From Neoechinorhynchus agilis (Eukaryota > Animalia > Acanthocephala), in contig CM121342.1 in NCBI GenBank assembly GCA_051530055.1, forward strand, positions 3,010,797 to 3,074,796: 64,000 nt of DNA, in the 5' to 3' direction. Position numbers and translations under genes: made by a program. Shown here one piece after another: positions 13,179 through 62,508 of the stretch; the first letter of the stretch is position 1, and every line of letters starts with the position of its first letter. Under the pieces are notes generated by a model. The model was not told where the DNA came from. It worked only from the letters and a program-made list of their open reading frames with translations, and searched no databases.

Positions 13179-13589
13179 TTAGCTACGAACTTTTCTCCAG
13201 CATCTCGCCTGAGTTCGTGAAGAAGAGAAATCTTGACTTGAGTAATCGTAACGACTTTCCGATGAATCCAAATTGTAAACAGCAGGTCGTAATGTAAAGG
13301 ATGTTACTTGATTCTTACATGATAATGAAAATTCCAATGAACTATTCGTCGCAGAGCCGCCATCAGGCAACCATTTTCTAGGGCGTTGAGAAATATTACT
13401 GAGTTCGTCGATCACCCTTCGAAAGTTGCTAGAAAAAATGTGAACGGTAAATGCGCACTTTTTGATTGCTTGAGAATATAAACTATCAACTCCATTAAGA
13501 GACTCAGTTTTAGTCGCGTTTTCAAAAATAGGTAAGCATTTCAAATGACGGATTGCGAGGAATAGAAAAGCGAGATGCATTGTGTTCAT
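13179..13589 (-). pseudogene. Signal-peptide ORF; possibly an internally deleted trehalase N-terminus
   Basis: Starts with hydrophobic MNTMHLAFLFLAIRHLKCLP. DSLYSQ and NFRRVIDEL..PRKW loosely resemble GH37 N-terminal motifs. Shares promoter and first 11 codons with the 14739 ORF. Confidence 0.4.
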
Positions 13590-17656: not shown

Positions 17657-18347
17657 ATCAACGATTGCGTTCGTAAATACTCGATGTAGTGTGTTTCGTG
17701 AATATCGACCGCTGATGATTTCATCCTCGATTTGGATGCGGCATTGCAGCTGTTGCCACCGTCGGAACTTCCACAATAATCGACAATACAACTTTTCACA
17801 TTTATTTGTAAGTGCGCAGCATTCAAATGTGAGTCACGATTTTACTCACATTAGAAAAGATGTTAAGCATTTGAGTGAGATGACTTAAGTAACTTACAAA
17901 ATAGTTCACACTCGTTTCTTACAACGGATACCTGTACTGAAAATTTCGTATAGGCTGAACAAAAATTATGTATAGAGTAAGAAAAATGATAGTATTTTTG
18001 AATTGTACCAAGTGAACCACGTCTAATGTGCTTTGATTTTACTTAAATTTCAACTCCATTAATTCTAAGTTTATTTCATTTAAAAAGTGGAGTTTAAATT
18101 CGTACTAGAGATCGAGAGTTATTAAAATGATTTCTCATTAGGAGCATTATTCTCATGAGCCAAGCAATTCCGTGATCTTTTCCTCATCGACGAGATACCA
18201 GTCTGAACCTGCCATTCTTGATTACGATTTGGAATTCCAAAACTTCGAAAATGATTTTGCGGATGACTATGGGGAAATTGTCTCGGTAGGACGTCTATCT
18301 CGTATTTAAGTCATTTGTATTTCGCTAAAACATAGGAAACAAATCCA

Positions 18348-26919: not shown

Positions 26920-29900
26920 TCATGTTTTCCTCTTTCGATAGAAGACTTTATCATTTACAGTGTATACATGAGTGTACTTCATTAGAGTTTTCTTAAGAGC
27001 TTCTTCGGTGCCTTCGAAATCTTCAACGTAAGGCGATAACTCATCGTAAGACAATGCTCGTTTCACTTCGAACAGAATATCGATTCGTTCCTGTACATTG
27101 TGAGGAAGATCAAATTTATCCATATAATATATTGACCGCTTGTCTTCGGACAATAGAGCGAATCCATTCAAAATAGAGAGCTCAGGAACCAAACCTTGGG
27201 GTAAAATACTTTCCCACACTTGCAGAAATTCCTTAATCAGCATACTCTTAACGTGCCGAAGAACGCTTATTGCGAACGATCGCTTAATGGTTTTTTCAAA
27301 ATCCACAAATAATGTTGATACCATCGATTGAATGAAGTCTTCTATCTCGGGCATTTCCTCTGTCAATGTACCGGTACATTTGTATTATGCCATTTTTCAA
27401 CTTAAAGTGATCTTTGGAGCACTACGTTACGGAATCATGAGATTCCTCAACATAAATAGTTTTTGGGTCGAACTTTGTGAAATTATCGGACAGAGACACA
27501 AAACCGTAATTTTTTGTCAAAATATTAAAATAGCAATATAGCAGTGGTATTCCACGCTTCGATCCTGAATAAAGCTATGCTTTTTGTTGCAATTTAATTT
27601 AAAACAAGGAAAACCGTAATTTTTTGTCAAAATATTGAAATTGCAATATAGGAGTGGTATTCCACGCTTTGATTCTCAATAAAGCTAAGCTTTTGTTGCA
27701 ATTTAATTTAAAACAAGGAAAACCGTAATTTTTTGTCAAAATATTAAAATTGAAATATAGGAGTGGTATTCCACGCTTTGATCATCAATAAAGATAAGCT
27801 TTTGTTGCAATTTAATTTAAAACAAGGAAAACCGTAATTTTTGTCAAAATATTAAAATTGCAATATAGGAGTGGTATTCCAAGTTTTGATCATCAATAAA
27901 GCTAAGCTTTTGTTGCAATTTAATTTAAAACAAGGAAAACCGTAATTTTTTGTCAAAATATTAAAATTGCAATATAGGAGTGGTATTCCACGCTTTGATT
28001 CTCAATAAAGCTAAGCTTTTGTTGCAATTTAATTTAAAACAAGGAAAACCGTAATTTTTTGTCAAAATATTAAAATATCAATATAGGAGTGGTATTCCAC
28101 GCTTTGATCATCAATAAAGATAAGCTTTTGTTGCAATTTAATTTAAAACAAGGAAAACCGTAATTTTTTGTCAAAATATTAAAATTGCAATATAGGAGCG
28201 GTATTCCACGCTTTGATTCTCAATAAAGCTAAGCTTTTGTTGCAATTTAATTTAAAACAAGGAAAACCGTAATTTTTGTCAAAATATTAAAATTGCAATA
28301 TAGGAGTGGTATTCCAAGTTTTGATCATCAATAAGGGTAAACTTTTGATGTAGTTCAATTTAAAACAAGGAAAACCGTAATTTTTTGTCAAAATATTAAA
28401 ATTGCAATATAGGAGTGGTATTCCAAGTTTTGATCATCAATAAGGGTAAACTTTTGATGTAGTTCAATTTAAAACAAGGAAAACCGTAATTTTTTGTCAA
28501 AATATTAAAATTGCAATATAGGAGTGGTATTCCACGCTTTGATCCTCAATAAAGCTAAGCTTTTGTTGCAATTTAATTTAAAACAAGGAAAACCGTAATT
28601 TTTTGTCAAAATATTAAAATATAAATATAGGAGTGGTATTCCAAGTTTTGATCATCAATAAGGGTAAACTTTTGATGTAGTTCAATTTAAAACAAGGAAA
28701 ACCGTAATTTTTGTCAAAATATTAAAATTGCAATATAGGAGTGGTATTCCACGCTTTGATCCTCAATAAAGCTAAGCTTTTGTTGCAATTTAATTTAAAA
28801 CAAGGAAAACCGTAATTTTTTGTCAAAATATTAAAATTGCAATATAGGAGTGGTATTCCACGCTTTGATCCTCAATAAAGCTAAGCTTTTGTTGCAATTT
28901 AATTTAAAACAAGGAAAACCGTAATTTTTTGTCAAAATATTAAAATATCAATATAGGAGTGGTATTCCACGCTTTGATCATCAATAAAGATAAGCTTTTG
29001 TTGCAATTTAATTTAAAACAAGGAAAACCGTAATTTTTTGTCAAAATATTAAAATTGCAATATAGGAGCGGTATTCCACGCTTTGATTCTCAATAAAGCT
29101 AAGCTTTTGTTGCAATTTAATTTAAAACAAGGAAAACCGTAATTTTTTGTCAAAATATTAAAATATAAATATAGGAGTGGTATTCCAAGTTTTGATCATC
29201 AATAAGGGTAAACTTTTGATGTAGTTCAATTTAAAACAAGGAAAACCGTAATTTTTTTGTCAAAATATTAAAATTGCAATATAGGAGTGGTATTCCATGT
29301 TTTGATCATCAATAAGGGTAAACTTTTGATGCAGTTCAATTTAAGGCAAGGAAAACCGTAATTTTTTGTCAAAATATTGAAATTGCAATATAGCAGTGGT
29401 ATTCCACGCTTTGATTCTCAATAAAGCTAAGCTCTTTTTGCAATTTAATTTAAAACAAGGAAAACCCCAATTTTTTGTCAAAATATTAAAATTGCTAGAA
29501 GAGATTATGGTTTTGCGAAAATGTTAAGGCCAGCAACACCCATTTATAATAATACAACAATACCCCAGTAATAAATTCAGGAGTCAAGGAAAGACGATCA
29601 ACGAACATTCGAGGTTCATTATAATATCCGACTAGTTCAATGATCCAAGACACGAATTCAGGGGTTAATAGAAACCATTGGTTTCTGAAGTTCATGCAAG
29701 TCAAACATTTTACTAAATAGCAAGAAGCTTTGCTGAATGTGCCGTCCCCGTCATTATACATCGCAGGAATAGTAAATCCGTGTAATTCGCCATTGATTAC
29801 CTTCTTCACGTCATCAATCGATTTAATAAGCGATTGGTTGTGACAAATTAATCCATAAAGTTTCTGATAATTCGTAGGATGGAATCGAAGATCATAATAA

Positions 29901-33605: not shown

Positions 33606-35194
33606 TGTAACAATAATCGTTTTGAATACAGAGAATTGTAGATTCGTGCAATAGGAATATATGGGAAGAATGTGTATAATGAATTCAATATCTATAAATC
33701 TAATGCTTTAGAAATATCAAACGAAATCAAAACATTCATTGATTTCTGATAATTATTGAAAATTTGACGGGTAAGCAGGATTACCTGACCGGAAAGCTTT
33801 GGTGACTTGGATTTGAAGGGTTTTTAGAAAAGGCGAGAACCATGGAGGGTCGCGGTTCGAGATTCATATTGTTTTGCAAGGAAAGGAGGCCTTCATCGCG
33901 CTCGGATCACGACTCTGTGTAATTTCTACAAATGTAGTCGAAGGGTCGCTCACGATCCCTGGAATCTCACATGTAAGTCGATCCGCATTGTTAAGATAAC
34001 TGAGGCGGCACACTCGACCATTGCCTATGCAGTTTGTGTTTACGAATCTTAAATTTATGAGCACTTGCTTAGGCTGACACCTTTATCATGGAAAATGAAA
34101 TCACCATTATCATCGGGTATAGCTTTAAAATTCATTCCCAACTATCTCCGTTTTTCAAACCATTTTTGACTTTGTTCGTGAGCCGAACACCAACTTTCAT
34201 CTTAAGATTAAAGTTTTTGAATCGTTATTAAAGAGCTTTTAAAAGTACACAAATTTCAATCTCTGTTAACTCATTGCTGTAACAGTGATTTATTTTTCTT
34301 CAATATTCTTTTAAGCAGATTAAATCAGTCGATTAATTTCTTTACTTAAAAGTCTAAAGCGGGATTATTTTATCTTTACGGCTAACAAATCTATCGTATT
34401 GATATCAAATACAATCTGTGAAATTTTATAAATGTTGAACTTAAATCGCAAAATACGTGTTATTGTTAAGCTCTTCATCCGGTGAATGATTTTTTATTAA
34501 AGAAGATGAACCTGACGAGGTTCGAAACATCTATAATAAAAAAATCATTTACCGGATAAAGAATTAAACAATAATTCCAATCATTGTCCCCGGTACCTCA
34601 ATTATCAACATTTTGCAAATGACGTGTTCTTTGCCTTTTAAGTTTTAATAAATCTTTTTTTCTTAGAAATTTATTTTGAACATTCATTGAACTTTGACAT
34701 TTCAAACTTATTTGTTTAAGTGCTATCAGCCAAGGCGTTAATAAATTCGGCTTATAGAAATTCACTCAGGCATTTTTTCATTTAGAATATCTTAAAAACA
34801 TTTTTGGTCATAGAGTGATTTTTTCTTTGCAATTTGATTTCAGACTCATTAAAAGTTGCCGATGATAACTATGAATCCTGTGAGTTTTGATAGCTTTTAT
34901 TTCCATGCGATATTGTCAAACTCCAAATCACATTCCCCAATGATATTTGCAAACAAATAACTGACAAGCAGCGTCGAAAAAATATACATCATTGATGTGA
35001 AAAATTATATTTTTAAATTATATTTATCGTGTAGGAAATGAAAGGCTTTCCGAAACACAAATTTATTCATTCTTTGAACAGAATGCATAGATAGTTGCGA
35101 CTACGACTAAAAGCTCCTTGAATATCATGAACAATATTTTATCCTTGGTCAATCGTCTCTTAAACATGGGTAAAATCAGCGATGATTGATAATA

Positions 35195-36141
35195 TCAGCC
35201 GCCATTTATTTTCTTCAGCAGTTTTTCAAGCAGTCCCTTGTGCCGAATATTTAATTGATTCGAACGAACTTGACTTAGGATGTTGACCAAATTGTTATTC
35301 CGAATTTCACTCAGCGCTATTTCACGTTCAATCATCGCGTTGAGTATCCGCTTTAGCATCGCGTGGTTCCGAACTGTGAACTTCTCGTCCAAGATGCTTT
35401 TTAAACGATCGCAGAGTCTTTGAGGCTCAAGTTCATTTCAATTGAAGGCTTTGATTTTCTTTTTGAAATCGATTCATTGAGTGGTTTGTCCTTCAATTGT
35501 GACCCTGATTTATTTTCGATCGGAATATTGGACATTTCCATAGGTTGCCGATTATAGATTCCCACCATCTTTTTTCCGATTTTATCGATAATGTCGATTA
35601 ACGGTTCGTTTTCCCCGTTGCTGGCCATCTTATGGAGAATATTTATAAGATCGGAATCTTTGATTTCATCCACTGTCATCTCTAATTCTGAAATCTCGGA
35701 AAGGACATCGTCCACCAGTTCTAGGCTTTTGGTTGCGTATTGTGAATCCAATAAAAATTTTAGTAATTTAATCTTCTTGGTTAAACGAGAAGGCGGCATC
35801 AATTGTTTGGATTCTGAAATCTGTTGACTGTGAACGTTTTCGACATTGTGAAGTCCAGTTTCTATTCCTCCATCGCTATTGATTCTCTTCGGCGATTCTG
35901 TTCTCTTTTCCGAAATTGCGTTGGAATCCTGATCACTAGAATCAGTATCTGATATTTCGGGTTCTACTTCTTTTGGTTTATTCAATTTGGGTTTGGTCGC
36001 TGGTCTTTCTTTAGATCGCTTTTGATTGAAAGCCTCCTTGACCTTCATAGCAACTTGGATTAAGAGTTTCTTGGGTGGAGCATTATCCTTGCTGTCGAGC
36101 ATCTCTCCAAGGACATCTATCAATCCGGATTGACGAATTTC
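35195..36141 (-). pseudogene. 5'-truncated, frameshifted third copy of the TFIIS-N-repeat gene
   Basis: ORFs 35401..36123 and 35195..35392 are near-identical to the C-terminal half of the 670-aa ORF; similarity stops at 36141. Confidence 0.9.
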
Positions 36142-37543
36142 ATCACAATGCGTTCATGTAGCACAGTAGCCGGAATTCTCCTTAATTAAAAAGAAAACAG
36201 ATTCGTTGTATTCAGTTTAAAGTATTTGCGTTCTTTTCCAGCCCTTCACTACGAATTTAACGCTTCTTTAATTGTTCAAAATTTCAGCTCTTGCTACACT
36301 GTTCAATAATACGCCTGACAAAATTCTCTTCACCATAAAGTTTAATTATTAGATGCTTTGATTATATGAAAATCAACACCATTAAAGGTTAGCGATCAAA
36401 ATAAATTTCTATCACTATGCTCACAAGTCTTATTGTTCCCCAAAGCACCCTGAAGTAGTCATTGTTACAAATTAGATCAATCGACTTAGCATCCTTTGTT
36501 TCTCAGAATTGTCAGTAGAAAAATTCCGTTATTGAAAGAAGAAGCTAAACTCTGGTCGTTTTCCATTAGGGACATCTTGTGTACTAAACAACGTGGACTC
36601 CACCTTCACATACCTACAAATGTTCAGACGGCGGGATTAAAAAGAACCAAATTTTTGATAGAAATAATTTATGTAAAATGGCTGAAAAGGGTCTCCATCA
36701 AAGTTCAATTTAAACAAAAAATTTACATAGTTTATCATTAAAAGTTTTAAAAAAGGGGATCCATAGTTCTGGAGGTCTACCGCGCGCAAAGAAGCACAAT
36801 GATTCTCCTACAATACTTTTGAGTGCACGGACGAGGGTTGGGAAAGGAACCAGGAGATGCCTTGAGAGCTTGATAATAGATTTAATTTTACAGAATGTAC
36901 TCTTCAGAGAAGTATTAATAAAAATTCGGTTTTGTGTAGAAGGGAAGTCAATTCCCAGCACACGAGAGTGCTTTTTGAAACCAAAACACGAACTTAAATC
37001 ACCCTTTCGTGCAAACCAATGAACATTTCTCCGGTTTCAATTAGATTTGTCTTTTGAGTGGGAAGTCAACGCTCGTGGCTATTTTAAAGTACGAACTAAA
37101 AACTTACCATGAAGTTATCGACGAGATCTACAAGGTTCTCAATTGTGTTGAAGCAAAACCCGTCGGTGGTGGAGACGGCAAGAGCGATCTCAACCGAGCG
37201 CAAAATCCGTTTAAATTAATGGCGGAAACTATTCACTGATTTTATTTTTTGTATTGTCTCTGATTGGTTAAATTCCAGCGAAGGAGCGACGACAAATGAA
37301 ACTTGAAAATTAAATGAAAGATTCCTGGGAATAATTCTTAGCAAAAAAATCCCGATTTCCAGTATGAACGAGAACCTATTTAAAATAAGGGGAATTATAT
37401 TTTTAAATTATAGTACACCCTTTTATTTAGTACGGCAATCACGTCGATAATATCAATCTTAAAATATTTTCTTTTACCAAAAAACCAAGAAAAGCACACA
37501 AAAGTTATAAAATTTATAGCGTATGTGGAGATTGAACTATTCA

Positions 37544-38170: not shown

Positions 38171-39809
38171 ATTCAATTCCCTAGTCGGCGATTGCATTAT
38201 TCTTAAATAATTAACAGCGAAAGGACATTGGCGTTATCGGTCTCAATATCACGCGGATTCTTTATTTCCTAACAGTCTCTTGCTTTATTCTTGTACCGAA
38301 TACGTTTTGGATTTTCTAACTCAATGGAATTTTCGATTTCAATTCTATAGATTTTCTGAATTCGAACACGCAAAGCGAAGGTGCACTTTTGATTTTCAGG
38401 AGTAATCGAGTGAGGTCGTGACTTTTGTTAGTATTGTCATTTTGGTTGTTGGTTCAATGACAGTAAAAGTTGGTTCATCGTAGATTGCTTTCATATAAGC
38501 AAGCAAATCTTCATAACAAACCGATTCAAATCAATGTTTCTTCAGAATACCTTTATTCTCCCAATTTACGACACTATGTGGATTATGGCAGTTCGGGCCG
38601 AATCGGCAACTATTGCTTGCCACAAAATAAAAACAAGCATGAACCTTCTGGCACTCTTTATCCATCACAAAACCGTCACACAATCTAAGCATACGACCAG
38701 TCTCGAAATCCGTTATAAATAAGATCTTTTTGAGGGTTCGGATTTTTACTTTATCGGCACCATGGAACTTTGCTGCCTGGAGATTGTGTTCCGACTTGAG
38801 ATCGTGGTCAAATGCACATTTTCGGCCTTTTGTAGAGCTTCCTTTGAGAGTTGTTAAAAAGTATTTACATCCATGAATATATTTGCAATCCTCATTGCGT
38901 GATGGTTAAAACCTACATCTCATGATTTTTGTATTCAAAGCCAGAATGAATTTTGTGTTGTTTTCGTCCGACAATAAACTTAGAAATCGGTGAGTTAAAC
39001 TGAGTTTGTACATATCGAGGAGCATTGTTGAAGGATCAACGTCCGTAGGAGTGAGATTCGCGACACTAATTTTAGTTTGCATTGTTTCCACCAATTTGTC
39101 AATAAAGGCATCATTAAAGGCTTCAGGACTCTCCATTATAAGTTGAAATTGTTAGTTTTTTCAACGCCATCGAACCAAATCTTCTGATATTTCTCTATTT
39201 CCTAACAGTCTCTTGCGTGATTCCTGTACCGAATACGTTTTGGATTTTCCAACTCAATGGAATTTACTTTAGATTTCAATTCACTAGTTGGCTTTTTCTT
39301 GATTCCTGCTCACTTGATTGCTATGGAACAATAGCGCCATCGAACCAAATCTTCTGATATTTCTCTATTTCCTAACAGTCTCTTGCGTGATTCTTGTACC
39401 GAATACGTGCGGGATTTTCTGACTTCATCAAGTTTTTTATTGCAAAGCTCAACATTACAGCTCGCCGCCGGTGGAGGTCGTGAGTTCCTAGCGGTTTCTT
39501 CAACATCGCTAATTGTCGTTCTTTGTCTTTGGCTTACAACCCTAACTTCAATGATATAAAATCGTAGCTTTAACAATCCTTTGTAAAGTCTGTTAGTTTC
39601 TTATTGATATCCTTCGACTTAATCAAATTTCGAACTGGTATTATCTGCCGAATTCATCCTCTAAGCAAAAAATCGGTTTGAAGTACTCGACCTTGTACCC
39701 ATCGTTCCTGGGCCAAACGAGCACGGCGAATGGCACTCTTGTTGTTTGGTTGAGTTCATTTTGTATGCTTCGGTTAATATTTTATTTACATCAGCTTGTC
39801 GTTAATGAA

Positions 39810-40690
39810 CTGCAAGCCAAAATAAACTTTCTCTCATAATCCAATAATAGAGTACAGTGATTGCGACTAGAAGATAAACTGCCAAATAAAGATTCCGCCA
39901 TCCTCTAACAAAATAAACGACTAAATCCAAAATCAACATTCCTATACCCCAAATGAAATTAGCCATTATACACGGGTGCCTCGGTATTCTGCTGCAAAAA
40001 CTTCAATCCTGAGAATATAACAAGAAAGGTGACCAATCTGCCAGCAAATTCCAAATAAAAAAACGGAATACTATAAAAAATATCAAGATGATTCCGATCA
40101 ATAACAAGATATAATGATTTTAACTGAACGGATGCATCCGATTTAGATGGTGTTTGAAAGTGCACAGCCGATTCCGAATATGATATTGATCCAAGCCCCG
40201 AGAAGAGCAATTGGATTCTTACAAAAGTTGTCGCCAAACATTGACAAAACGGCTGCCCCAATTACTGATCCTATGAAAAAGGCTGGCTGTGGAATATCCT
40301 TTAAGAATTTCCGATCGCAATATAGATCAAAAGCGAATACCAGCGATCTGTCGTCGGGAAGCGGGTGGATGTAGCCGTTGGACAGGGTATTGTTTTATTT
40401 GACAGTGAATAATAATTCTCAAACTTTCCATCTGCATTAATTGAAATCGCGTCGCTCATCGGCCATCAAATTAATTTAAAAATTTCTATTCTACTTATAT
40501 TTTTGAAAATAGTAACGTTAAAGCTTTCAATATTTTATTTTTTGAAGCTCTATCATTCAAAGCCTCGTGATCATTTTCTTCAATTCTTTTACTTTTCGCC
40601 CCAATTCTCGTTCTTATACAACTCAAATCCTCCATTAGTAAAGGACATTTATGTTCCGGCATTTGAAATAAATCTAACGAATGAATTTCC
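39810..40690 (-). pseudogene. SLC22-like (MFS organic ion transporter) pseudogene fragment, left arm
   Basis: PEHKC; SLVFAFDLYCDRKFL..AFFIGSVIGAAVLSMFGDNFCKNP; YFVRGWRNLYL..YWIMRES. Contains stops and frameshifts. Confidence 0.72.
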
Positions 40691-41489
40691 CTTCGCTGTT
40701 TTGTGATTACATTGAGTGCCATTTAAACATTTATGGCATCATAGACGTATCTTCTTATATTCTTATAATCTGCCACCTTTTCAGCTATTCTCAAAACCAC
40801 ACCATGGAAAATCCCCTGATTTTCATGATCGAAGTAGATTCCAACAAGTTCATCGGCGACTTCGCTGTATGTTGTATTGCTTGGTGCTGATCATGCGTAG
40901 TCCGAATGTTTTTCTCGTGGTTTTGCAAGGTTCATTGCCTGATTCTGTTCTCGAGTAGAAATGACTGCTGATTCGGTTGAAGATGAAATGATTGAACGTT
41001 GTATTGAACGTGGCTTTTGATCGAATCGATGAGTACGAGTCTATTTCACTATTGTGGCTCATTTGATCACTGAACGATGGTGAACAGTTCATGTTGTGGT
41101 ATGGCGGTACGTTTTCCATTGTGCTTAAATACTTGGATTTGAAGATTCGAATCAGTGAAAGGAAATGCTGAGATCGTGAAAATAAAGATGGCTGAGTTAG
41201 GTGAGGATGCCTTTCAATAGTAAAAGAATGAGAACTTACATTGAAATCATTAAAGCATTTCTGATTCGCAGGATAAAGGCTACTTTGTATTAATGCTGAT
41301 TTTTTGACATTTTTAAATTTTTATCCTTTTTTGCTTAGCGAAAAAATGTTAAAATTAGTCCATAGACAACATTTAGTTGTTAATTGAGAAGCGATTTCCG
41401 TATCGATAACATTTTGTTAAACATACTCATTTTTTTGAGACATCAAATCATTCACACAATCGCTCTGGATCCCTGAGATGCCGTTTTGG

Positions 41490-41730
41490 TGTAACGGTCG
41501 AAAGGACGGATGAAGCGTTCCCTCTCGTTTTCAGAGCAGATTTTTGTAGGAGGAATGCTCCTGATCTCGGATCGCCAGTGATTCGTCTCAATCTCTTAGA
41601 CAATTCCTAGACCAGGTCCTGGGCCGCAGTGAGCTCACACTTTCCAGCATTAAGCTTAACGCTTAATCTCGCATTCTCCCTAATCTTTCCTGATCTCTCG
41701 GTTCGGATATCAGCCTTATGGACGTCAAGA
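41490..41730. mobile_element. Possible solo-LTR-like GC-richer block upstream of the TFIIS-N-repeat gene (mirrored at ~46400-46640)
   Basis: Starts TGTAAC and is abruptly richer in GC than its flanks. No TSD or second LTR identified. Confidence 0.25.
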
Positions 41731-41962
41731 AGGAAGTAAAATGATAATCAGACTCAAGATATAGACAAATAACTACCATACAAATGAAGATTCTTACTAC
41801 GAACAATAAATCATTTTAGTAGGCTGCTATTATTTTTGTCAGCTCTTCTTCAGTACTAATTTTGATTACTAATTCATCAAAACAATGAAAATAAAGCTTC
41901 CATTTCACGTTTGACAATATCTCAGATATTTGTACATTTGAAAGACGCCAATTGAGGTCGAA

Positions 41963-43976
41963 TTGACGTCGTTCAATTTCGGTGCAGTAAAACTAAAACC
42001 ATACTTTAGAATTGTCTTTAAGGTGCAAGAGAACGAATCAAAAATGACGATCAAGCGAACATCAAATGCTAAGGATAAATCACTCGCTCAAATATGTGAT
42101 GAATTGAGAGATAATCTCGACGGTGATTCTTGTACAATCAACCAATCTTTGGCCAAACGAAACCTGCGAGAGTTGTTAACGCGATCGATTACAGCCGAAG
42201 AAATCTTAAACTTTGGGATGCTTGAGATGGTAGACGAAATGGCCGTAGACAAAGATTGCAAAAGTACAAGTTGGTTCCTAAGTAAATTAAAGAGCAAATT
42301 CAAAAAGATTGTCGGTGAAAAATATATTCCAAGGATGAAAACGACGAAGACATTGGTCAGTACGACCTCAACTCTAAAACGAGCAAATAAAGATGAAGTA
42401 ATGGCGAAAAAGAAGATGACAGATTCAAGCGATAAAGGACGAATCCATTATGAAATGGCAACGTCCAAATCATTAAATATGCTGGTTAAAAAAGTTAAAA
42501 TTGGATTGGACTCACAGTTTAAGGTTACAAACAAGAGCTTAGTAACCAGTGTCTTTTCTGAGATTCTCAAACAAGAAATGACCATCTCTCAGATTGGTAA
42601 GTCCGGCCTAATAAAGATTCTCCACCAAATGAATCAAAACAAAGAAAACGGAGAACTTGACCATTTGATTAAAGAAGTTGCAGCAAAAATTAAAGTAGTG
42701 CTTGGCATGGAGAAAGGTAAAAATGCCGATGATAAATCTCATACGATGTCCGGTATCCACTCAAAGTTTGATGTTGAGATTGAAGAGCAGTGTCCGATAG
42801 AAACGAAATCTAAATCCAGTTTTGAAGACGCGAGCTGTAAAGAAATTTCAAGGAAGAGACTGTCATCAACCATTCAAGGCGAAGAGAAAACAAAAATTCA
42901 GCGGACAAATTCAACACATCTCCGTCAAAGAATCTTGATGACTATGAACTCTGAGCACAAAATTGTGAATTCTGATTTATTAAGGAGCATCGTTGATGAA
43001 ATTCTGAAGGGCGAAGTTAGCCTGAGTGAAATTCGTCAATCCGGATTGATAGATGTCCTTGGAGAGATGCTCGACAACGAGGATAATGCTCCACTCAAGA
43101 AACTCTTAATCCAAGTTGCTATGAAGGTCAAGGAGGCTTTCAATCAAAAGCGATCTAAAGAAAGACCAGCGACCAAATCCAAATTGAATAAACCAAAAGA
43201 AGTAGAACCCGAAATATCAAATACTGATTCTAGTGATCGGGGTTCTAACGCAATTTCGGAAAAGAGAACAGAATCGACGAAGAGAATCAATAGCGATGGA
43301 GGAATAGAAACGGGACTTCACAATGTCGAAAACGTTCACAGTCAACAGATTTCAGAATCCAAACAATTGATGCCGCCTTCTTGTTTAACCAAGAAGATTA
43401 AATTACTAAAATTTTTATTGGATTCACAATACGCAACCAAAAGCCTAGAACTGGTGGACGATGTCCTTTCCGAGATTTCAGAATTAGAGATGACTGTGGA
43501 TGAAATCAAAGATTCCGATCTTATAAATATTCTCCATAAGATGGCCAGCAACGGGGAAAACGAACCGTTAATCGACATTATCGATAAAATCGGAAAAAAA
43601 GATGGTGGGAATCTATAATCGGCAACCTACGGAAATGTCCAATATTCCGATCGAAAATAAATCAGGGTCACAATTGAAGGACAAACCACTCAATGAATCG
43701 ATTTCAAAAAGAAAATCAAAGCCTTCAATTGAAATGAACTTGAGCATCAAGGAACTCTGCGATCGTTTAAAAAGCATCTTGGACGAGAAGTTCACAGTTC
43801 GGAACCACGCGATGCTAAAGCGGATACTCAGCGCGATGATTAAACGTGAAATAGCGCTGAGTGAAATTCGGAATAACAATTTGGTCAACATCCTAAGTCA
43901 AGTTCGTTCGAATCAATTAAATATTCGGCACAAGGGACTGCTTGAAAAATTGTTGAAGAAAATAAATGGCGGCTGA
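41963..43976 (+). pseudogene. TFIIS-N-repeat gene, left-arm copy, split by a 1-nt insertion in an A-run at ~43594-43600
   Basis: The 551-aa and 124-aa ORFs together equal the 670-aa mirrored ORF; A7 here vs A6 in the other two copies. Could be a homopolymer error. Confidence 0.8.
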
Positions 43977-44154
43977 TATTATCAATCATCACTGATTTTA
44001 CCCCATGTTTAAGAGACGATTGACCAAGGATAAAATATTGTTCATGATATTCAAGGAGCTTTTAGCTAAAAGCTCCTTGAATATCATGAACAATATTTTA
44101 TCCTTGGTCAATCGTCTCTTAAACATGGGGTAAAATCAGTGATGATTGATAATA

Positions 44155-46167
44155 TCAGCCGCCATTTATTTTCTTCAACAATTTTTCAAGCAGTCCCTTG
44201 TGCCGAATATTTAATTGATTCGAACGAACTTGACTTAGGATGTTGACCAAATTGTTATTCCGAATTTCACTCAGCGCTATTTCACGTTTAATCATCGCGC
44301 TGAGTATCCGCTTTAGCATCGCGTGGTTCCGAACTGTGAACTTCTCGTCCAAGATGCTTTTTAAACGATCGCAGAGTTCCTTGATGCTCAAGTTCATTTC
44401 AATTGAAGGCTTTGATTTTCTTTTTGAAATCGATTCATTGAGTGGTTTGTCCTTCAATTGTGACCCTGATTTATTTTCGATCGGAATATTGGACATTTCC
44501 GTAGGTTGCCGATTATAGATTCCCACCATCTTTTTTCCGATTTTATCGATAATGTCGATTAACGGTTCGTTTTCCCCGTTGCTGGCCATCTTATGGAGAA
44601 TATTTATAAGATCGGAATCTTTGATTTCATCCACAGTCATCTCTAATTCTGAAATCTCGGAAAGGACATCGTCCACCAGTTCTAGGCTTTTGGTTGCGTA
44701 TTGTGAATCCAATAAAAATTTTAGTAATTTAATCTTCTTGGTTAAACGAGAAGGCGGCATCAATTGTTTGGATTCTGAAATCTGTTGACTGTGAACGTTT
44801 TCGAGATTGTGAAGTCCCGTTTCTATTCCTCCATCGCTATTGATTCTCTTCGTCGATTCTGTTCTCTTTTCCGAAATTGCGTTAGAACCCCGATCACTAG
44901 AATCAGTATTTGATATTTCGGGTTCTACTTCTTTTGGTTTATTCAATTTGGATTTGGTCGCTGGTCTTTCTTTAGATCGCTTTTGATTGAAAGCCTCCTT
45001 GACCTTCATAGCAACTTGGATTAAGAGTTTCTTGAGTGGAGCATTATCCTCGTTGTCGAGCATCTCTCCAAGGACATCTATCAATCCGGATTGACGAATT
45101 TCACTCAGGCTAACTTCGCCCTTCAGAATTTCATCAACGATGCTCCTTAATAAATCAGAATTCACAATTTTGTGCTCAGAGTTCATAGTCATCAAGATTC
45201 TTTGACGGAGATGTGTTGAATTTGTCCGCTGAATTTTTGTTTTCTCTTCGCCTTGAATGGTTGATGACAGTCTCTTCCTTGAAATTTCTTTACAGCTCGC
45301 GTCTTCAAAACTGGATTTAGATTTCGTTTCTATCGGACACTGCTCTTCAATCTCAACATCAAACTTTGAGTGGATACCGGACATCGTATGAGATTTATCA
45401 TCGGCATTTTTACCTTTCTCCATGCCAAGCACTACTTTAATTTTTGCTGCAACTTCTTTAATCAAATGGTCAAGTTCTCCGTTTTCTTTGTTTTGATTCA
45501 TTTGGTGGAGAATCTTTATTAGGCCGGACTTACCAATCTGAGAGATGGTCATTTCTTGTTTGAGAATCTCAGAAAAGACACTGGTTACTAAGCTCTTGTT
45601 TGTAACCTTAAACTGTGAGTCCAATCCAATTTTAACTTTTTTAACCAGCATATTTAATGATTTGGACGTTGCCATTTCATAATGGATTCGTCCTTTATCG
45701 CTTGAATCTGTCATCTTCTTTTTCGCCATTACTTCATCTTTATTTGCTCGTTTTAGAGTTGAGGTCGTACTGACCAATGTCTTCGTCGTTTTCATCCTTG
45801 GAATATATTTTTCACCGACAATCTTTTTGAATTTGCTCTTTAATTTACTTAGGAACCAACTTGTACTTTTGCAATCTTTGTCTACGGCCATTTCGTCTAC
45901 CATCTCAAGCATCCCAAAGTTTAAGATTTCTTCGGCTGTAATCGATCGCGTTAACAACTCTCGCAGGTTTCGTTTGGCCAAAGATTGGTTGATTGTACAA
46001 GAATCACCGTCGAGATTATCTCTCAATTCATCACATATTTGAGCGAGTGATTTATCCTTAGCATTTGATGTTCGCTTGATCGCCATTTTTGATTCGTTCT
46101 CTTGCACTTTAAAGACAATTCTAAAGTATGGTTTTAGTTTTACTGCACCGAAATTGAACGACGTCAA
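44155..46167 (-). CDS. Intronless Lys-rich protein with five TFIIS-N-like helical repeats (first ATG gives ~643 aa)
   Basis: Uninterrupted 670-codon ORF with five copies of a pattern such as SEILKQEMTISQIGKSGLIKILHQM..ELDHLIKEVAAKIK, separated by S/K/E-rich linkers. Confidence 0.8.
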   Translation of the reverse strand: MTSFNFGAVKLKPYFRIVFKVQENESKMAIKRTSNAKDKSLAQICDELRDNLDGDSCTINQSLAKRNLRELLTRSITAEEILNFGMLEMVDEMAVDKDCKSTSWFLSKLKSKFKKIVGEKYIPRMKTTKTLVSTTSTLKRANKDEVMAKKKMTDSSDKGRIHYEMATSKSLNMLVKKVKIGLDSQFKVTNKSLVTSVFSEILKQEMTISQIGKSGLIKILHQMNQNKENGELDHLIKEVAAKIKVVLGMEKGKNADDKSHTMSGIHSKFDVEIEEQCPIETKSKSSFEDASCKEISRKRLSSTIQGEEKTKIQRTNSTHLRQRILMTMNSEHKIVNSDLLRSIVDEILKGEVSLSEIRQSGLIDVLGEMLDNEDNAPLKKLLIQVAMKVKEAFNQKRSKERPATKSKLNKPKEVEPEISNTDSSDRGSNAISEKRTESTKRINSDGGIETGLHNLENVHSQQISESKQLMPPSRLTKKIKLLKFLLDSQYATKSLELVDDVLSEISELEMTVDEIKDSDLINILHKMASNGENEPLIDIIDKIGKKMVGIYNRQPTEMSNIPIENKSGSQLKDKPLNESISKRKSKPSIEMNLSIKELCDRLKSILDEKFTVRNHAMLKRILSAMIKREIALSEIRNNNLVNILSQVRSNQLNIRHKGLLEKLLKKINGG

Positions 46168-47429
46168 TTCGACCTCAATTGGCGTCTTTCAAATGTACAA
46201 ATATCTGAGATATTGTCAAACGTGAAATGGAAGCTTTATTTTCATTGTTTTGATGAATTAGTAATCAAAATTAGTACTGAAGAAGAGCTGACAAAAATAA
46301 TAGCAGCCTACTAAAATGATTTATTGTTCGTAGTAAGAATCTTCATTTGTATGGTAGTTATTTGTCTATATCTTGAGTCTGATTATCATTTTACTTCCTT
46401 CTTGACGTCCATAAGGCTGATATCCGAACCGAGAGATCAGGAAAGATTAGGGAGAATGCGAGATTAAGCGTTAAGCTTAATGCTGGAAAGTGTGAGCTCA
46501 CTGCGGCCCAGGACCTGGTCTAGGAATTGTCTAAGAGATTGAGACGAATCACTGGCGATCCGAGATCAGGAGCATTCCTCCTACAAAAATCTGCTCTGAA
46601 AACGAGAGGGAACGCTTCATAAGTCCTTTCGACCGTTACACCAAAACGGCATCTCAGGGATCCAGAGCGATTGTGTGAATGATTTGATGTCTCAAAAAAA
46701 TGAGTATGTTTAACAAAATGTTATCGATACGGAAATCGCTTCTCAATTAACAATTAAATGTTGTCTATGGACTAATTTTAACATTTTTTCGCTAAGCAAA
46801 AAAGGATAAAAATTTAAAAATGTCAAAAAATCAGCATTAATACAAAGTAGCCTTTATCCTGCGAATCAGAAATGCTTTAATGATTTCAATGTAAGTTTTC
46901 ATTCTTTTACTATTGAGAGACATCTTCACCAAACTCAGCCATCTTTATTTTCACGATCTCAACATTTCCTCTTACTGATTCGAATCTTCAAATCCAAGTA
47001 TTTAAGCACAATGGAAAACGTACCGCCATAATCGTTCAATGATCAAATGAACCACAATCCTGAAGTGGACTCGTACTCATCGATTCGATCAAAAGCCACG
47101 TTCAATACAACGTTCAATCATTTCATCTTCAACCGAATCAGCAGTCATTTCTACTCGAGAACAGAATCAGGCAATGAACCTTGCAAAACCACGAGAAAAA
47201 CATTCGGACTACGCATGATCAGCACCAAGCAATACAACATACAGCGAAGTCGCCGATGAACTTGTTGGAATCTACTTCGATCATGAAAATCAGGGGATTT
47301 TCCATGGTGTGGTTTTGAGAATAGCTGAAAAGGTGGCAGATTATAAGAATATAAGAAGATACGTCTATGATGCCATAAATGTTTAAATGGCACTCAATGT
47401 AATCACAAAACAGCGAAAGGAAATTCATT

Positions 47430-48300
47430 CGTTAGATTTATATCAAATGCCGGAACATAAATGTCCTTTACTAATGGAGGATTTGAGTTGTATAAGAACG
47501 AGAATTGGGGCGAAAAGTAAAAGAATTGAAGAAAATGATCACGAGGCTTTGAATGATAGAGCTTCAAAAAATAAAATATTGAAAGCTTTAACGTTACTAT
47601 TTTCAAAAATATAAGTAGAATAGAAATTTTTAAATTAATTTGATGGCCGATGAGCGACGCGATTTCAATTAATGCAGATGGAAAGTTTGAGAATTATTAT
47701 TCACTGTCAAATAAAACAATACCCTGTCCAACGGCTACATCCACCCGCTTCCCGACGACAGATCGCTGGTATTCGCTTTTGATCTATATTGCGATCGGAA
47801 ATTCTTAAAGGATATTCCACAGCCAGCCTTTTTCATAGGATCAGTAATTGGGGCAGCCGTTTTGTCAATGTTTGGCGACAACTTTTGTAAGAATCCAATT
47901 GCTCTTCTCGGGGCTTGGATCAATATCATATTCGGAATCGGCTGTGCACTTTCAAACACCATCTAAATCGGATGCATCCGTTCAGTTAAAATCATTATAT
48001 CTTGTTATTGATCGGAATCATCTTGATATTTTTTATAGTATTCCGTTTTTTTATTTGGAATTTGCTGGCAGATTGGTCACCTTTCTTGTTATATTCTCAG
48101 GATTGAAGTTTTTGCAGCAGAATACCGAGGCACCCGTGTATAATGGCTAATTTCATTTGGGGTATAGGAATGTTGATTTTGGATTTAGTCGTTTATTTTG
48201 TTAGAGGATGGCGGAATCTTTATTTGGCAGTTTATCTTCTAGTCGCAATCACTGTACTCTATTATTGGATTATGAGAGAAAGTTTATTTTGGCTTGCAGT
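47430..48300 (+). pseudogene. SLC22-like pseudogene fragment, right arm
   Basis: Mirror of 39810-40690. Confidence 0.72.
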
Positions 48301-49713
48301 TCATTAACGACAAGCTGATGTAAATAAAATATTAACCGAAGCATACAAAATGAACTCAACCAAACAACAAGAGTGCCATTCGCCGTGCTCGTTTGGCCCA
48401 GGAACGATGGGTACAAGGTCGAGTACTTCAAACCGATTTTTTGCTTAGAGGATGAATTCGGCAGATAATACCAGTTCGAAATTTGATTAAGTCGAAGGAT
48501 ATCAATAAGAAACTAACAGACTTTACAAAGGATTGTTAAAGCTACGATTTTATATCATTGAAGTTAGGGTTGTAAGCCAAAGACAAAGAACGACAATTAG
48601 CGATGTTGAAGAAACCGCTAGGAACTCACGACCTCCACCGGCGGCGAGCTGGGATGTTGAGCTTTGCAATAAAAAACTTGATGAAGTCAGAAAATCCCGC
48701 ACGTATTCGGTACAAGAGTCACGCAAGAGACTGTTAGGAAATAGAGAAATATCAGAAGATTTGGTTCGATGGTGCTATTGTTCCATAGCAATCAAGTGAG
48801 CAGGAATCAAGAAAAAGCCAACTAGTGAATTGAAATCTAAAGTAAATTCCATTGAGTTGGAAAATCCAAAACGTATTCGGTACAGGAATCACGCAAGAGA
48901 CTGTTAGGAAATAGAGAAATATCAGAAGATTTGGTTCGATGGCGTTGAAAAAACTAACAATTTCAACTTATAATGGAGAGTCCTGAAGCCTTTAATGATG
49001 CCTTTATTGATAAAATTGGTGGAAACAATGCAAACTAAAATTAGTGTCGCGAATCTCACTCCTACGGACGTTGATCCTTCAACAATGCTCCTCGATATGT
49101 ACAAACTCAGTTTAACTCACCGATTTCTAAGTTTATTGTCGGACGAAACAACACAAAATTCATTCTGGCTTTGAATACAAAAATCATGAGATGTAGGTTT
49201 TAACCATCACGCAATGAGGATTGCAAATATATTCATGGATGTAAATACTTTTTAACAACTCTCAAAGGAAGCTCTACAAAAGGCCGAAAATGTGCATTTG
49301 ACCACGATCTCAAGTCGGAACACAATCTCCAGGCAGCAAAGTTCCATGGTGCCGATAAAGTAAAAATCCGAACCCTCAAAAAGATCTTATTTATAACGGA
49401 TTTCGAGACTGGTCGTATGCTTAGATTGTGTGACGGTTTTGTGATGGATAAAGAGTGCCAGAAGGTTCATGCTTGTTTTTATTTTGTGGCAAGCAATAGT
49501 TGCCGATTCGGCCCGAACTGCCATAGTCGCGGTCGTCCACCCGAACAGCGGCCTATATTCGGCGAGGCCCTTCTACAAAATGCGTCCTTTTTAAGACAAA
49601 AAGAGAAGATGGAACTGGTCAGGAGGATGAATTATTGGTTGCAAGTATTATAAACAAACGAATAACATAACTTCCATGTGTGACAATTAACCGCTCTCAC
49701 GATCGCTAAAGTT

Positions 49714-50260
49714 ATGGTCAGTGCGTCCACCGACGAATGGGCTCAAATGAACCTCAGCCGGTGGAGATGTTCGTCCAATATCCATTCAGAACTCACTGGT
49801 TTCAATCTACGAACGGGCACTAATTGCATCGACCACGGATGCCACGGTTTTTTACCCCATAAATCCGTTCAGACGGCTTTGTCTGAAATTATCACCAATT
49901 TTAATTCGAATCAGGAGTCAATGAACATTTTAATTTCCTTCGATATCTCTAAGGCTTTTGATAGCATTGATATCGCTTTTATAATAAAGATCCTTTGTTA
50001 TTTTCAGTCTAAGCAATTTTTTTATCAAGATGACACATCTCTCAAGATTTATCATCAAACTAAAGGAGTTCCGCAAGGGTCCCCTCTCTCACTCATCCTC
50101 TTCTAATTTGCTTCCCAATTTCTGCTTAAGAACTGCCGAGCCTGCAATGAATTAACCCTATATGCAGACGATTTCAATGCGGTGATCAAGGAAGCGAACT
50201 ACCTAGCCGCTATAAGGAAACTCTCAGATTTACTGTCATGTCTTAATTCTATTCTCCTTC
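49714..50260 (+). mobile_element. Degenerate LINE (CR1/L2/Jockey-type) reverse transcriptase fragment
   Basis: HGFLPHKSVQTAL, FDISKAFD, GVPQGSPLS and, after a stop, LYADD. EAFNDAFI at ~48973 may be the upstream linker. Confidence 0.85.
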
Positions 50261-51321
50261 AGACCCTTTAAAGACGAAATTTATTTTAAAATCTTAGTCG
50301 GTTTTTGATAAACAACGTGTTCGCGAATTTTATAAACAATTTTTTAATCTGACCTCGTCGTCAGTTTCTAATAAGATCACAATCTTGGGAAACACCCTAC
50401 GACCTCCGCAAATTCAAAAAACTTAAGTGTCGCTAAGCTTAAATGCAGAAGATCTTTTAAACTTGAACTCTGCTCTCATGATACCAGAAGCATTTGGAAC
50501 TCTTGAGCAATCTCGGGCCTAGTTTTTTACTCGTGAGGAATACCCCCGAATAACGATTAAAGTACATTATCACTTTCCTAGAGGCTCTGGGCAAACTCCC
50601 TTACTCCTGGAAACAAGCGCTTAAATGGACAGCGATGATATAACTTTATTACTATCGAATTATAATTATTCCTACACATAAATTATGTCGGTTAATCATC
50701 CAATGTCTTCCTTCGAATAAATCTTGAGCCTCGTGTTAGGATAATTCATCAATTCGTTCACACAGCACCGAAACTTGCAGTTGAAGATTGGCAATCTCTT
50801 TTTCCACATTTGAGTCAAAAATAGAGCTTCCTAGAAGATGTAACAGGCGTAGAGTGATCTCGCAGGATTCAGTTCAATGTAAATTTTCGTAACTAAGTAT
50901 TCAAGCTATTGCAATTATAAATTTTATTAGCAACGTTAGACGTCTAAAATCCAATTCGTTAGGACGCAACGTAGTGACCAAAGTTTAAGTTTTGATGAAA
51001 TCCGATTTAAATCGGTTATAGAATTTGCTAGTTAGAAATCTCGTAGACTACTGGGATTTGGAATTAACTTTATTTCTCGTGAAAATACTGAAGCCAATCC
51101 CCTGCACATATCTTTTGCTTTTTTAATTAAAACAGCGCTTTAGAAAGGCCAACTAATTCTTTGGGTTCACTCGAATACGGACGTTTGCTGATAAATACCG
51201 TGATTTGCCGGAAAGCAAATCGAGTTGTTTACAAAACATTTCAATGTTACGCTCTAATTATTTGTTTATGTTCCGCCAATTTTCCCGATTGATGGGTTCT
51301 TAGACTCACAATCTCTCGCCG

Positions 51322-52068
<747 letters not shown>

Positions 52069-59984: not shown

Positions 59985-60257
59985 TTAAGGTTCAATTGTT
60001 CATTAAACAGTGGACGAATTGAAGAATATAGGACTAAACGAAAGAATAGCACCAGTTGGGAAACGTAGGATATCATCCATTGAAGCGATTGAAAATTCAA
60101 GCTATCGAACACTTTCTGAATTGGAGTTAAGTTTGAAACGATAGAGAATGTTTCTTTAATGGTCGATAATAAAGCACAATTTATTTCCTTTTAATTTGAA
60201 ACACAAATTTTAGTAATAGTATTTAATCGCTTATTCTTAATAAGGCAAATATTGAAC

Positions 60258-62012
60258 TTGCTTATTTTATTTAGATTTTTTGGTCTGTTTTCCTCGATTT
60301 AATATTGCCTTCCTTGAACATGCGAAAATTAAAATATTTAATTTTAATAAATCTCTAAAAATGCCGATAAATCTGCTTCCGAAAAAAATTAAAAGTATTC
60401 TGCTTTCAAAGTTTGCTTATTTTATTTAGATTTTTTGGTCTGTTTCCCTCGATTTAATATTGCCTTCCTTGAACATGCGAAAATTAAAATATTTAATTTT
60501 AATAAATCTCTAAAAATGCCGATAAATCTGCTTCCGAAAAAAATTAAAAGTATTCTGCTTTCAAAATTTGCTTATTTTATTTAGATTTTTTGGTCTGTTT
60601 TCCTCGATTTAATATTGCCTTCCTTGAACATGCGAAAATTAAAATATTTAATTTTAATAAATCTCTAAAAATGCCGATAAATCTGCTTCCGAAAAAAATT
60701 AAAAGTATTCTGCTTTCAAAGTTTGCTTATTTTATTTAGATTTTTTGGTCTGTTTCCCTCGATTTAATATTGCCTTCCTTGAACATGCGAAAATTAAAAT
60801 ATTTAATTTTAATAAATCTCTAAAAATGCCGATAAATCTGCTTCCGAAAAAAATTAAAAGTATTCTGCTTTCAAAATTTGCTTATTTTATTTAGATTTTT
60901 TGTCTGTTTCCCTCGATTTAATATTGCCTTCCTTGAACATGCGAAAATTAAAATATTTAATTTTAATAAATCTCTAAAATGCCGATAAATCTGCTTCCGA
61001 AAAAAATTAAAAGTATTCTGCTTTCAAAGTTTGCTTATTTTATTTAGATTTTTTGGTCTGTTTCCCTCGATTTAATATTGCCTTCCTTGAACATGCGAAA
61101 ATTAAAATATTTAATTTTAATAAATCTCTAAAAATGCCGATAAATCTGCTTCCGAAAAAAATTAAAAGTATTCTGCTTTCAAAGTTTGCTTATTTTATTT
61201 AGATTTTTTGGTCTGTTTCCCTCGATTTAATATTGCCTTCCTTGAACATGCGAAAATTAAAATATTTAATTTTAATAAATCTCTAAAAATGCCGATAAAT
61301 CTGCTTCCGAAAAAAATTAAAAGTATTCTGCTTTCAAAGTTTGCTTATTTTATTTAGATTTTTTGGTCTGTTTCCCTCGATTTAATATTGCCTTCCTTGA
61401 ACATGCGAAAATTAAAATATTTAATTTTAATAAATCTCTAAAAATGCCGATAAATCTGCTTCCGAAAAAAATTAAAAGTATTCTGCTTTCAAAATTTGCT
61501 TATTTTATTTAGATTTTTTGTCTGTTTCCCTCGATTTAATATTGCCTTCCTTGAACATGCGAAAATTAAAATATTTAATTTTAATAAATCTCTAAAAATG
61601 CCGATAAATCTGCTTCCGAAAAAAATTAAAAGTATTCTGCTTTCAAAGTTTGCTTATTTTATTTAGATTTTTTGTCTGTTTCCCTCGATTTAATATTGCC
61701 TTCCTTGAACATGCGAAAATTAAAATATTTAATTTTAATAAATCTCTAAAAATGCCGATAAATCTGCTTCCGAAAAAAATTAAAAGTATTCTGCTTTCAA
61801 AGTTTGCTTATTTTATTTAGATTTTTTGGTCTGTTTTCCTCGATTTAATATTGCCTTCCTTGAACATGCGAAAATTAAAATATTTAATTTTAATAAATCT
61901 CTAAAAATGCCGATAAATCTGCTTCCGAAAAAAATTAAAAGTATTCCGCTTTCAAAATTTGCTTATTTTATTTAAATTTTTTGTCTGTTTCCCTCGATTT
62001 AAAATTGCCTTC
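60258..62012. repeat. Tandem satellite, ~155-bp unit, ~11.3 near-identical copies
   Basis: ttgcttattttatttagatttttt... starts at 60258, 60413, 60568, 60723, 60878, 61031, 61186, 61341, 61496, 61650, 61804 and 61959. Confidence 0.97.
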
Positions 62013-62508
62013 AATTGTTCGTAATATTGGGTTTTTCTGCTCTTTATTGACTCCATTATGGCACTTTCTGTTCTTTTGGTATTCTTGGTCTTATAATCGT
62101 GCTAATGTCTTTTTGTCTGCACCAATGATAAAAAATATAAGACAGGATTATTTCTTACAATTATTATATTTATTTTTCTCCTTGTTTAACTCTTCTATTC
62201 TTCACTTGGAAGCAAACTTTCTATGTATTTGAGTGCATAAATTGATCTTGTTGATTAATGTGTTCTGTTAAGTCGAAACGATTGAAACTTTTTTAATTGC
62301 GCGTAGTTTTAGAAGATTGACAAACTGAAGATCAATTTTTGAGTTAAATCTGATTTATTGAAGCTGATCATTTTTCGATAGGTCACAAAATCTACTTAGA
62401 TTTCCTAAAAGATACCAGACTGAAGATGACCGCTTGCATTTCCTTTATGTCGTCTCGTCAGGATAAAAAAATTACATAATTTTCTCTTTTATTAGAATTG
62501 CAGACACG

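Follow-up and report, generated by a model that had tools for sequence, protein, structure and literature searches.

Five MED26-like TFIIS N-terminal domains in one Neoechinorhynchus agilis protein: a candidate multivalent adaptor and its gene family

The locus examined in this study raises the question of what a protein could do that is built from five versions of one small helical domain and carries no other domain recognised by Pfam. The gene lies on the minus strand of a 64,000-nucleotide stretch of DNA (positions 3,010,797 to 3,074,796 of contig CM121342.1, hereafter the window), which is located on a 16.4-Mb chromosome of the acanthocephalan Neoechinorhynchus agilis (assembly GCA_051530055.1), a fish-parasitic thorny-headed worm. 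Profile comparisons and predicted structures support the identification of the modules as TFIIS N-terminal domains (TNDs), with the TND of MED26 as the best match. By analogy with characterised TNDs, the whole protein is probably a nuclear multivalent adaptor, a reading to which we assign a probability of roughly 0.6.

Fold and ancestry of the five modules

The open reading frame (ORF) that a preliminary description of the window had placed at positions 44155-46167 is present and intact on the minus strand, where it comprises 670 codons counted from a TTG, with a stop codon immediately upstream. Its product is 100% identical over 670 amino acids to KAL7670341.1 (locus tag ACOME3_005278, P0006 in the current study), which NCBI names a hypothetical protein. 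The in-frame extension at 46087-46167 contains no ATG. Because of the upstream stop, and because the ATG at 46086 (MAIKRT...) is the first that is conserved in all paralogs, this ATG is the probable true start, giving a coding sequence at 44155-46086 (stop codon at 44155-44157) and a product of 643 amino acids. The annotated gene model instead splices a short upstream exon onto the ORF, and the window copy has a stop codon at the site of the paralogs' annotated ATG.

This product contains five modules of about 80 residues each, alignable over about 83 columns. Module 1 occupies residues 11-93 (positions 45808-46056, net charge -1), module 2 residues 141-223 (45418-45666, +5), module 3 residues 287-369 (44980-45228, 0), module 4 residues 445-527 (44506-44754, -3), and module 5 residues 564-643 (44158-44397, +9), all on the minus strand, with the last helix of module 5 ending at the C-terminus. 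Since a BLAST search of the whole protein against itself returned the identity match only, the modules were excised and compared pairwise by BLASTP. All pairs proved alike (20-43% identity), the weakest giving an E-value of 0.08 and the strongest one of 6e-16. This result confirms the five tandem repeats of the preliminary description; the five motifs it quoted were all found as well, at residues 70, 200, 346, 504, and 624 of the 670-residue reading. Its statement that there is no catalytic domain is also borne out, in that Pfam finds neither a catalytic nor any other domain in the whole protein, leaving only the five modules and the linkers between them.

The linkers are rich in Ser, Thr, Lys, and Glu, and are predicted to be disordered, with AlphaFold predicted local distance difference test (pLDDT) scores below 50. 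They had been described as both disordered and basic; the disorder stands, while the basic character is clear for linker 1 only (net charges of +6, 0, +1, and +2 for linkers 1 to 4). Basic clusters resembling nuclear localisation signals (NLSs), namely KRKSK, RKR, and KKK, occur within the linkers. Linker 2 (45233-45421, residues 224-286) additionally holds acidic segments that include aromatic residues, SKFDVEIEEQCPIE and SSFEDAS, and show no variation among close paralogs; a similar stretch (QSFNELMD) occurs in the divergent paralog P0016. These segments of linker 2 may represent a short linear motif, conceivably even a ligand of the protein's own modules.

The ancestry of the modules was addressed with two profiles searched against the sequences in the PDB. 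When the profile consisted of the window's five modules, TND chains filled places 1 to 8, with the MED26 N-terminal domain at E=0.0015 and PPP1R10 at approximately 0.1. The second profile was built from A3, an alignment of 18 modules from seven N. agilis family proteins, and it matched residues 7-84 of human MED26, the entire TND, at E=9e-8 (35 bits). After MED26, the next unrelated protein followed at 0.0035, PPP1R10 at 0.27, and TFIIS at 2.5-4.3. In a shuffle control, the MED26 fragment scored 33.9 bits, a value that was reached by none of 2000 shuffled sequences (maximum 21.1) and was far above that of the reversed sequence (2.2 bits). The sequence homology of the family to established TNDs is therefore significant, based on the A3 match combined with the shuffle control. 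A match of the whole protein to the DNA-directed RNA polymerase 30 kDa polypeptide (6rfl_S) in a single-sequence phmmer search of the PDB was non-significant (E=0.22) and was not used.

Predicted structures point in the same direction. Module 2, modelled alone with AlphaFold (AF2) using A3, forms five helices with a pLDDT of 92.5 and a predicted template modelling score (pTM) of 0.80. When this model was compared with the PDB by Foldseek, the top 19 matches were all TND-type domains. The best neighbour was the MED26 TND 6zv3, with template modelling (TM) scores of 0.75/0.73, a root-mean-square deviation of 2.6 A, and a probability of 1.00, and other TND neighbours included the LEDGF IBD (TM-score up to 0.77), PPP1R10, Spn1/Iws1, Elongin A, and a trypanosome LW domain. 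Unrelated helical proteins in the same list had TM-scores of 0.41 or below. The full-length model has an overall pLDDT of 54, with five bundles at 60-82 that all show the same helix pattern (approximately 13, 13, 6, 10, and 20+ residues), and TND-type domains again form the majority of its top Foldseek matches. No confident packing between modules was seen in the full-length model (pTM 0.23). By definition, TNDs are five-helix bundles of right-handed topology that share little sequence (27% identity) but keep their core conserved (PMC9987994), and the modelled modules fit this definition. Taken with the MED26 match and its shuffle control, these models support the assignment made in the preliminary description, and the modules are best regarded as TNDs in both fold and ancestry.

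Conservation across the gene family

The family to which the five-module gene belongs comprises about 30 gene models, all of them from N. agilis. Fifteen are close copies (84-100% identity), distributed over three chromosomes and two small contigs and in many cases carrying adjacent locus tags; the remainder are divergent members with one to four modules, plus fragments. An exhaustive profile search of 1.84 billion representative proteins returned divergent members with one to five modules, all from N. agilis, and no convincing relatives outside this species, and a word-indexed homologue search with the A3 profile added only two more N. agilis fragments. Two ENA proteins considered as relatives from other organisms (P0025 and P0027) were repetitive sequences with short partial matches and were treated as spurious. 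The published N. agilis assembly measures 46.2 Mb, has 13,655 predicted genes, and is without 44.7% of metazoan BUSCOs (PMC12690905); the ACOME3 locus tags and the accession GCA_051530055 do not appear in the main text of that paper.

Selection was estimated with the Nei-Gojobori ratio of nonsynonymous to synonymous substitution rates (dN/dS), comparing the window copy with two paralogous loci, L001 and L002, both on another chromosome. The ratio was about 0.44 for the whole coding sequence, 0.25-0.33 for the modules (Fisher p = 2e-5 to 4e-4), and 0.7-1.4 for the linkers (not significant). By this measure the modules are under purifying selection and the linkers are evolving nearly neutrally. 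The 643-codon frame is, moreover, intact in at least three loci at dS values of up to 0.10.

The order of the modules is also conserved. In P0016, which contains four modules, modules 1 to 4 each match the corresponding window module best, with identities of 48, 39, 40, and 38% compared to 14-32% for the off-diagonal pairs. Module 2 of P0019 matches window module 5 (51% identity), and the three modules of P0017 match window modules 1, 2, and 5. Divergent paralogs (about 40-50% identity) thus retain module order, and as judged from these alignments the order is older than the recent gene copies. Its retention implies that the five modules are differentiated and individually conserved, as would be expected if each has its own partner.

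Two paralogs have unusual surroundings or architecture. P0017, the three-module paralog, is annotated as a partial protein at the end of contig JBMGUZ010000028.1 (L004, positions 1-2185). Its first 20 residues match the C-terminal end of an Argonaute PIWI domain (SIPAPCYYAHHVAFRARHYVE), and further PIWI-domain sequence is encoded in the DNA upstream, though with an in-frame stop; either a gene model has fused two neighbours or there is a real juxtaposition of Argonaute and TND. P0024 (ACOME3_002643), which lies outside the window, has a single TND that follows approximately nine tandem copies of an acidic and Lys-rich repeat of about 80 residues (NLPTGENLAP...KSEQKTEPEK), so that the disordered part has been multiplied rather than the domain.

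Proposed function

The protein can be pictured as beads on a string, with five differentiated MED26-like TNDs joined by disordered Ser/Thr/Lys-rich linkers bearing the NLS-like clusters. Elsewhere, TNDs have no catalytic role and recognise short disordered motifs in transcription regulators (PMC9987994). By analogy, each module is probably a non-catalytic docking site of this kind, and the protein would then be a nuclear multivalent adaptor able to gather or sequester as many as five partners, the most plausible candidates being components of the RNA polymerase II (Pol II) initiation or elongation machinery. The preliminary description had suggested a multivalent scaffold or sponge for Pol II elongation factors, as a lineage-specific or selfish regulator, and this functional proposal stands as a hypothesis. 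Being without MED26's Mediator anchor, it could also compete with MED26-type docking. Because the Mediator-binding parts are absent, and because the modules differ in charge and in docking-surface residues, the partners are probably not identical to the MED26 ligands (EAF/ELL, TFIID), and the five modules probably have different specificities.

Comparison with known TND proteins shows both how close this resemblance is and where it ends. The MED26 TND (PDB 5ODD and 6ZV3) is the best match in sequence, with all five helices aligned, as well as in structure, and it equals the N. agilis modules in size and helix pattern. MED26, however, has one TND together with middle and C-terminal parts that anchor it to Mediator (MED4/MED7), while the N. 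agilis protein has five TNDs only, and identity to the MED26 domain is only about 20%. An orthologous relationship to MED26 was rejected, since Pfam detects neither Med26_M nor Med26_C and the protein consists of the five TNDs and disordered linkers only. P0023, a single-module family member, was rejected as a MED26 orthologue as well, having no PDB or Pfam match outside its module. The wider TND family (PF08711, PS51319), including TFIIS domain I (the LW domain), Elongin A, PPP1R10 (PNUTS), IWS1/Spn1, and the LEDGF IBD, shares the five-helix bundle, is among the top Foldseek matches, and is likewise non-catalytic and set within disordered regions. Its sequence similarity to the N. agilis modules is marginal (E=0.27 for PPP1R10 and E=2.5 for TFIIS), and each of these proteins carries a single TND beside other functional domains (PMC9987994).

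With regard to valency, the nearest counterpart is IWS1, which has three TND-interacting motifs (TIMs) and one TND, and in which one polypeptide gathers several transcription factors through TND:TIM contacts. The arrangement is inverted: the motifs are the repeated element in IWS1, the reader domain in the N. agilis protein. Scaffolds of the multi-PDZ, multi-SH3, and multi-WW type likewise string several small motif-binding domains of individual specificity along flexible linkers; these offer an analogy only, as their folds and cellular roles are unrelated to those of the N. agilis protein and there is no homology.

Several observations weigh against an adaptor of this kind. Pfam yields nothing above threshold for the whole protein, the single modules, or the family consensus, a result consistent with the NCBI label of hypothetical protein. 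Med26 (PF08711, cut-off 20.6 bits) ranks first for the family consensus, at 15.5 bits, and likewise for one module of P0017, at 16.2 bits, both scores lying below threshold; single window modules match it at best with E=0.046, and other sub-threshold matches are scattered (DUF3689, F-box-like_2, and BDHCT_assoc). The Foldseek E-values are weak (0.15-1.4 for the 87-residue query), as is usual for small helical domains, so that it is the rank order and the TM-scores that carry the structural evidence. Within the docking surface, the equivalents of MED26 R61/K62 in a HMMER alignment are A/V, N/Q, L/D, A/S, and R/S in modules 1 to 5, and the dyad is not conserved; across the family modules, a strongly conserved Asn pair (M-x-x-N-x-x-N) occupies the loop where MED26 has these residues. 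Takahashi et al. 2011 are said to have found that mutation of the R61/K62 dyad abolishes elongation-factor docking. A review that cites their work speaks only of mutating an interaction site (PMC9987994). The Trp of the LW motif (MED26 W80) is replaced by F, I, V, K/M, and I in modules 1 to 5, as the preliminary description had correctly noted for its C-terminal Trp, and the position is hydrophobic in four or five of the five modules. The MED26 TND has a net charge of +7, compared to -1, 0, and -3 for modules 1, 3, and 4. Finally, several family gene models are truncated or fragments and the twin copy in the left palindrome arm (see below) is frameshifted; part of the family is, on the evidence of these sequences, decaying.

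These departures bear directly on which ligands the modules could read. The TIM-binding surface is a basic patch of three to five residues between two shallow hydrophobic pockets (PMC9987994). Only modules 2 and 5 are basic, the other three being neutral or acidic, and helix 5 retains three to five lysines in every module. Since a basic patch is needed, modules 2 and 5 could plausibly bind acidic TIMs in the canonical way, whereas such binding is doubtful in the case of modules 1, 3, and 4.

The loss of the dyad and of the Trp, together with the charge of modules 1, 3, and 4, would also fit the best placed of the alternatives, in which the fold was kept and the function moved. The TND-derived bundles would then no longer read acidic TIMs; their ligands would be other proteins, nucleic acid (for the basic modules 2 and 5), or each other, and the process would have no connection with Pol II elongation. 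Among the 18 family modules of A3, conservation falls mostly on hydrophobic or helix-capping positions, which look structural, and no relatives that could link the family to a conserved pathway were found outside N. agilis. However, the characterised TNDs are all found in transcription regulators and read disordered motifs (PMC9987994), the helix-5 lysines have been kept throughout, and the separate conservation of each module position under purifying selection suggests maintained, specific surfaces. Such a change of function is possible but, in our view, rather unlikely, and a multivalent TND adaptor is preferred.

Genomic setting and implications

The surroundings of the gene provide information on how the family has grown. 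The window and locus L001 are similar over more than 7.6 kb at 98% identity, across chromosomes, and the duplicated blocks contain no gene model with a Pfam match. The genes neighbouring the window copy and three loci are ordinary ones, encoding Forkhead, protein kinase, RRM, LRR, class-V aminotransferase, SRP receptor beta, SDR, and PSMD5-like proteins. No transposase, reverse-transcriptase, or integrase domains were found by Pfam in the ORF or among these neighbours, and the identification of the protein as a transposable-element product was rejected on this basis. Because of the extensive similarity shared with L001 and the lack of transposon domains, the family has spread in N. agilis by recent segmental duplication and not as an obvious mobile element.

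One duplication of this sort, in inverted orientation, would be present in the window itself. The right arm (44066-49528) of a palindrome contains the gene, and the left arm (38581-44065) comprises 3.4 kb of upstream region and a second gene copy; similarity to L001 extends outward from the right arm to about 51696. The palindrome has no spacer (centre at 44065/44066). Over 5486 nt its arms share 99.05% identity and differ by 28 mismatches and nine gaps, including a 21-nt indel. The left arm contains a twin of the gene on the plus strand (ACOME3_005277, 42044-43976), which differs by three amino acids and has an extra A at 43594 that shifts its frame in the linker between modules 4 and 5. A third, truncated copy on the minus strand (35107-36142) extends from the middle of module 3 to the stop codon, with a frameshift in module 5. 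The preliminary description was silent on both the twin and this 3' fragment. The third copy starts exactly at the position equivalent to the palindrome centre and runs into the ancestral downstream flank (34216-35106), which is also seen in L001. From the order of these pieces, the layout looks like an ancestral minus-strand gene (34216-36142 plus 45104-51696) that was interrupted by a fold-back inverted duplication and 2.4 kb of unique sequence. The two copies in the arms are convergent, their stop codons lie 89 nt from the palindrome centre, and an AATAAA overlaps their last codons. Read-through transcription across the palindrome would yield a long hairpin RNA.

It is important to note that the assembly is a MaSuRCA hybrid of Illumina reads and Nanopore R9.4 reads from about 50 pooled worms. 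The palindrome could be an assembly artefact of Nanopore fold-back reads, and the extra A at 43594 may be a homopolymer error. A simple fold-back read chimera was set aside in view of the 28 substitutions and nine indels between the arms, the complex structure, and the 2.4 kb of unique sequence at one junction, although the palindrome may nonetheless be artefactual.

Further repeats were observed in and around the palindrome. The co-duplicated upstream region contains short tandem repeats of approximately 170 bp (39165-39419 and 48690-48944, and 6924-7521 in L001), present in different copy numbers in the window and in L001. At 51698-51954 the window has 257 consecutive C residues, which account for a spike in GC skew (the strand imbalance of G and C) at 50-52 kb; this run is absent from the 98%-identical locus L001 and is probably an assembly or base-calling artefact or else an extreme homopolymer. 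Elsewhere in the window there are two tandem satellites, one at 27473-29623 (roughly 20 copies of units of approximately 109 bp, 64-96% identity) and one at 60203-62048 (roughly 12 copies of units of approximately 155 bp, some 99% identical, within a stretch of 26% GC). A pair of 165-nt inverted repeats (13557-13721 and 14607-14771, 99%) lies beside direct repeats at 13862-14442 and 17083-17662 (93-99%), and these repeats may represent a small mobile element present twice. Scans of the window with Rfam and for tRNA genes gave no matches.

The amplification of the family has suggested a second alternative, in which the gene would be driven by conflict: an array of MED26-type TNDs without a Mediator anchor would draw TND ligands away as a decoy, its amplification would be selfish or dosage-driven, and hairpin RNA from the palindrome would silence the family. 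About 30 gene models in a 46-Mb genome (PMC12690905), nearly identical segmental copies on different chromosomes, two convergent copies meeting without a spacer so close to their stop codons, linkers that evolve nearly neutrally or faster, and one paralog directly downstream of an Argonaute PIWI-domain fragment are all in keeping with this scenario. Conversely, the module dN/dS values indicate purifying and not positive selection, the palindrome may be an artefact of the sequencing of pooled worms, and the position of the AATAAA suggests that transcription terminates before the palindrome centre. It is accordingly ranked below a change of function of the modules and is considered improbable. 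Last in rank and barely credible is the proposal that the gene is non-functional, either a decaying recent duplicate or the cargo of an unrecognised mobile element whose TND likeness is a relic: the frameshifted twin, the fragmentary third copy, the truncated family models, and the stop codon at the paralogs' annotated ATG are as it would predict, but at least three loci retain an uninterrupted frame of 643 codons, dN/dS in the modules is about 0.3 (p=2e-5), no transposon domains accompany the ORF, and divergent paralogs keep the order of the modules.

The domain itself is known, and in every protein that the review PMC9987994 describes it occurs once, beside other functional parts. Phrase searches of one literature collection found no paper on tandem or multiple TNDs, and PMC9987994 describes neither a protein that consists of nothing but five TNDs nor a family of approximately 30 such arrays. 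In the TND:TIM code by which Pol II elongation complexes are put together, the TND is the reading partner. A protein of five differentiated TNDs alone would come already equipped for multivalent reading. From it one could learn to what extent TND specificity can diverge, and whether valency on the reader side can organise or sequester transcription factors. A bolder and distinctly doubtful extension of the adaptor reading is that, in this drastically reduced genome, lineage-specific pentavalent TND arrays serve as a Pol II assembly hub or a competing decoy, that each module reads a different motif, and that the amplification reflects dosage demand or intragenomic conflict, possibly under hairpin-RNA control. 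The current study provides a domain assignment for about 30 hypothetical proteins of an aquaculture-relevant parasite, and the A3 profile can be used to look for the family in other Syndermata. If the proposed adaptor role is correct, the family could reveal in what way regulatory hubs are rebuilt in a parasite whose gene set has been pared down.

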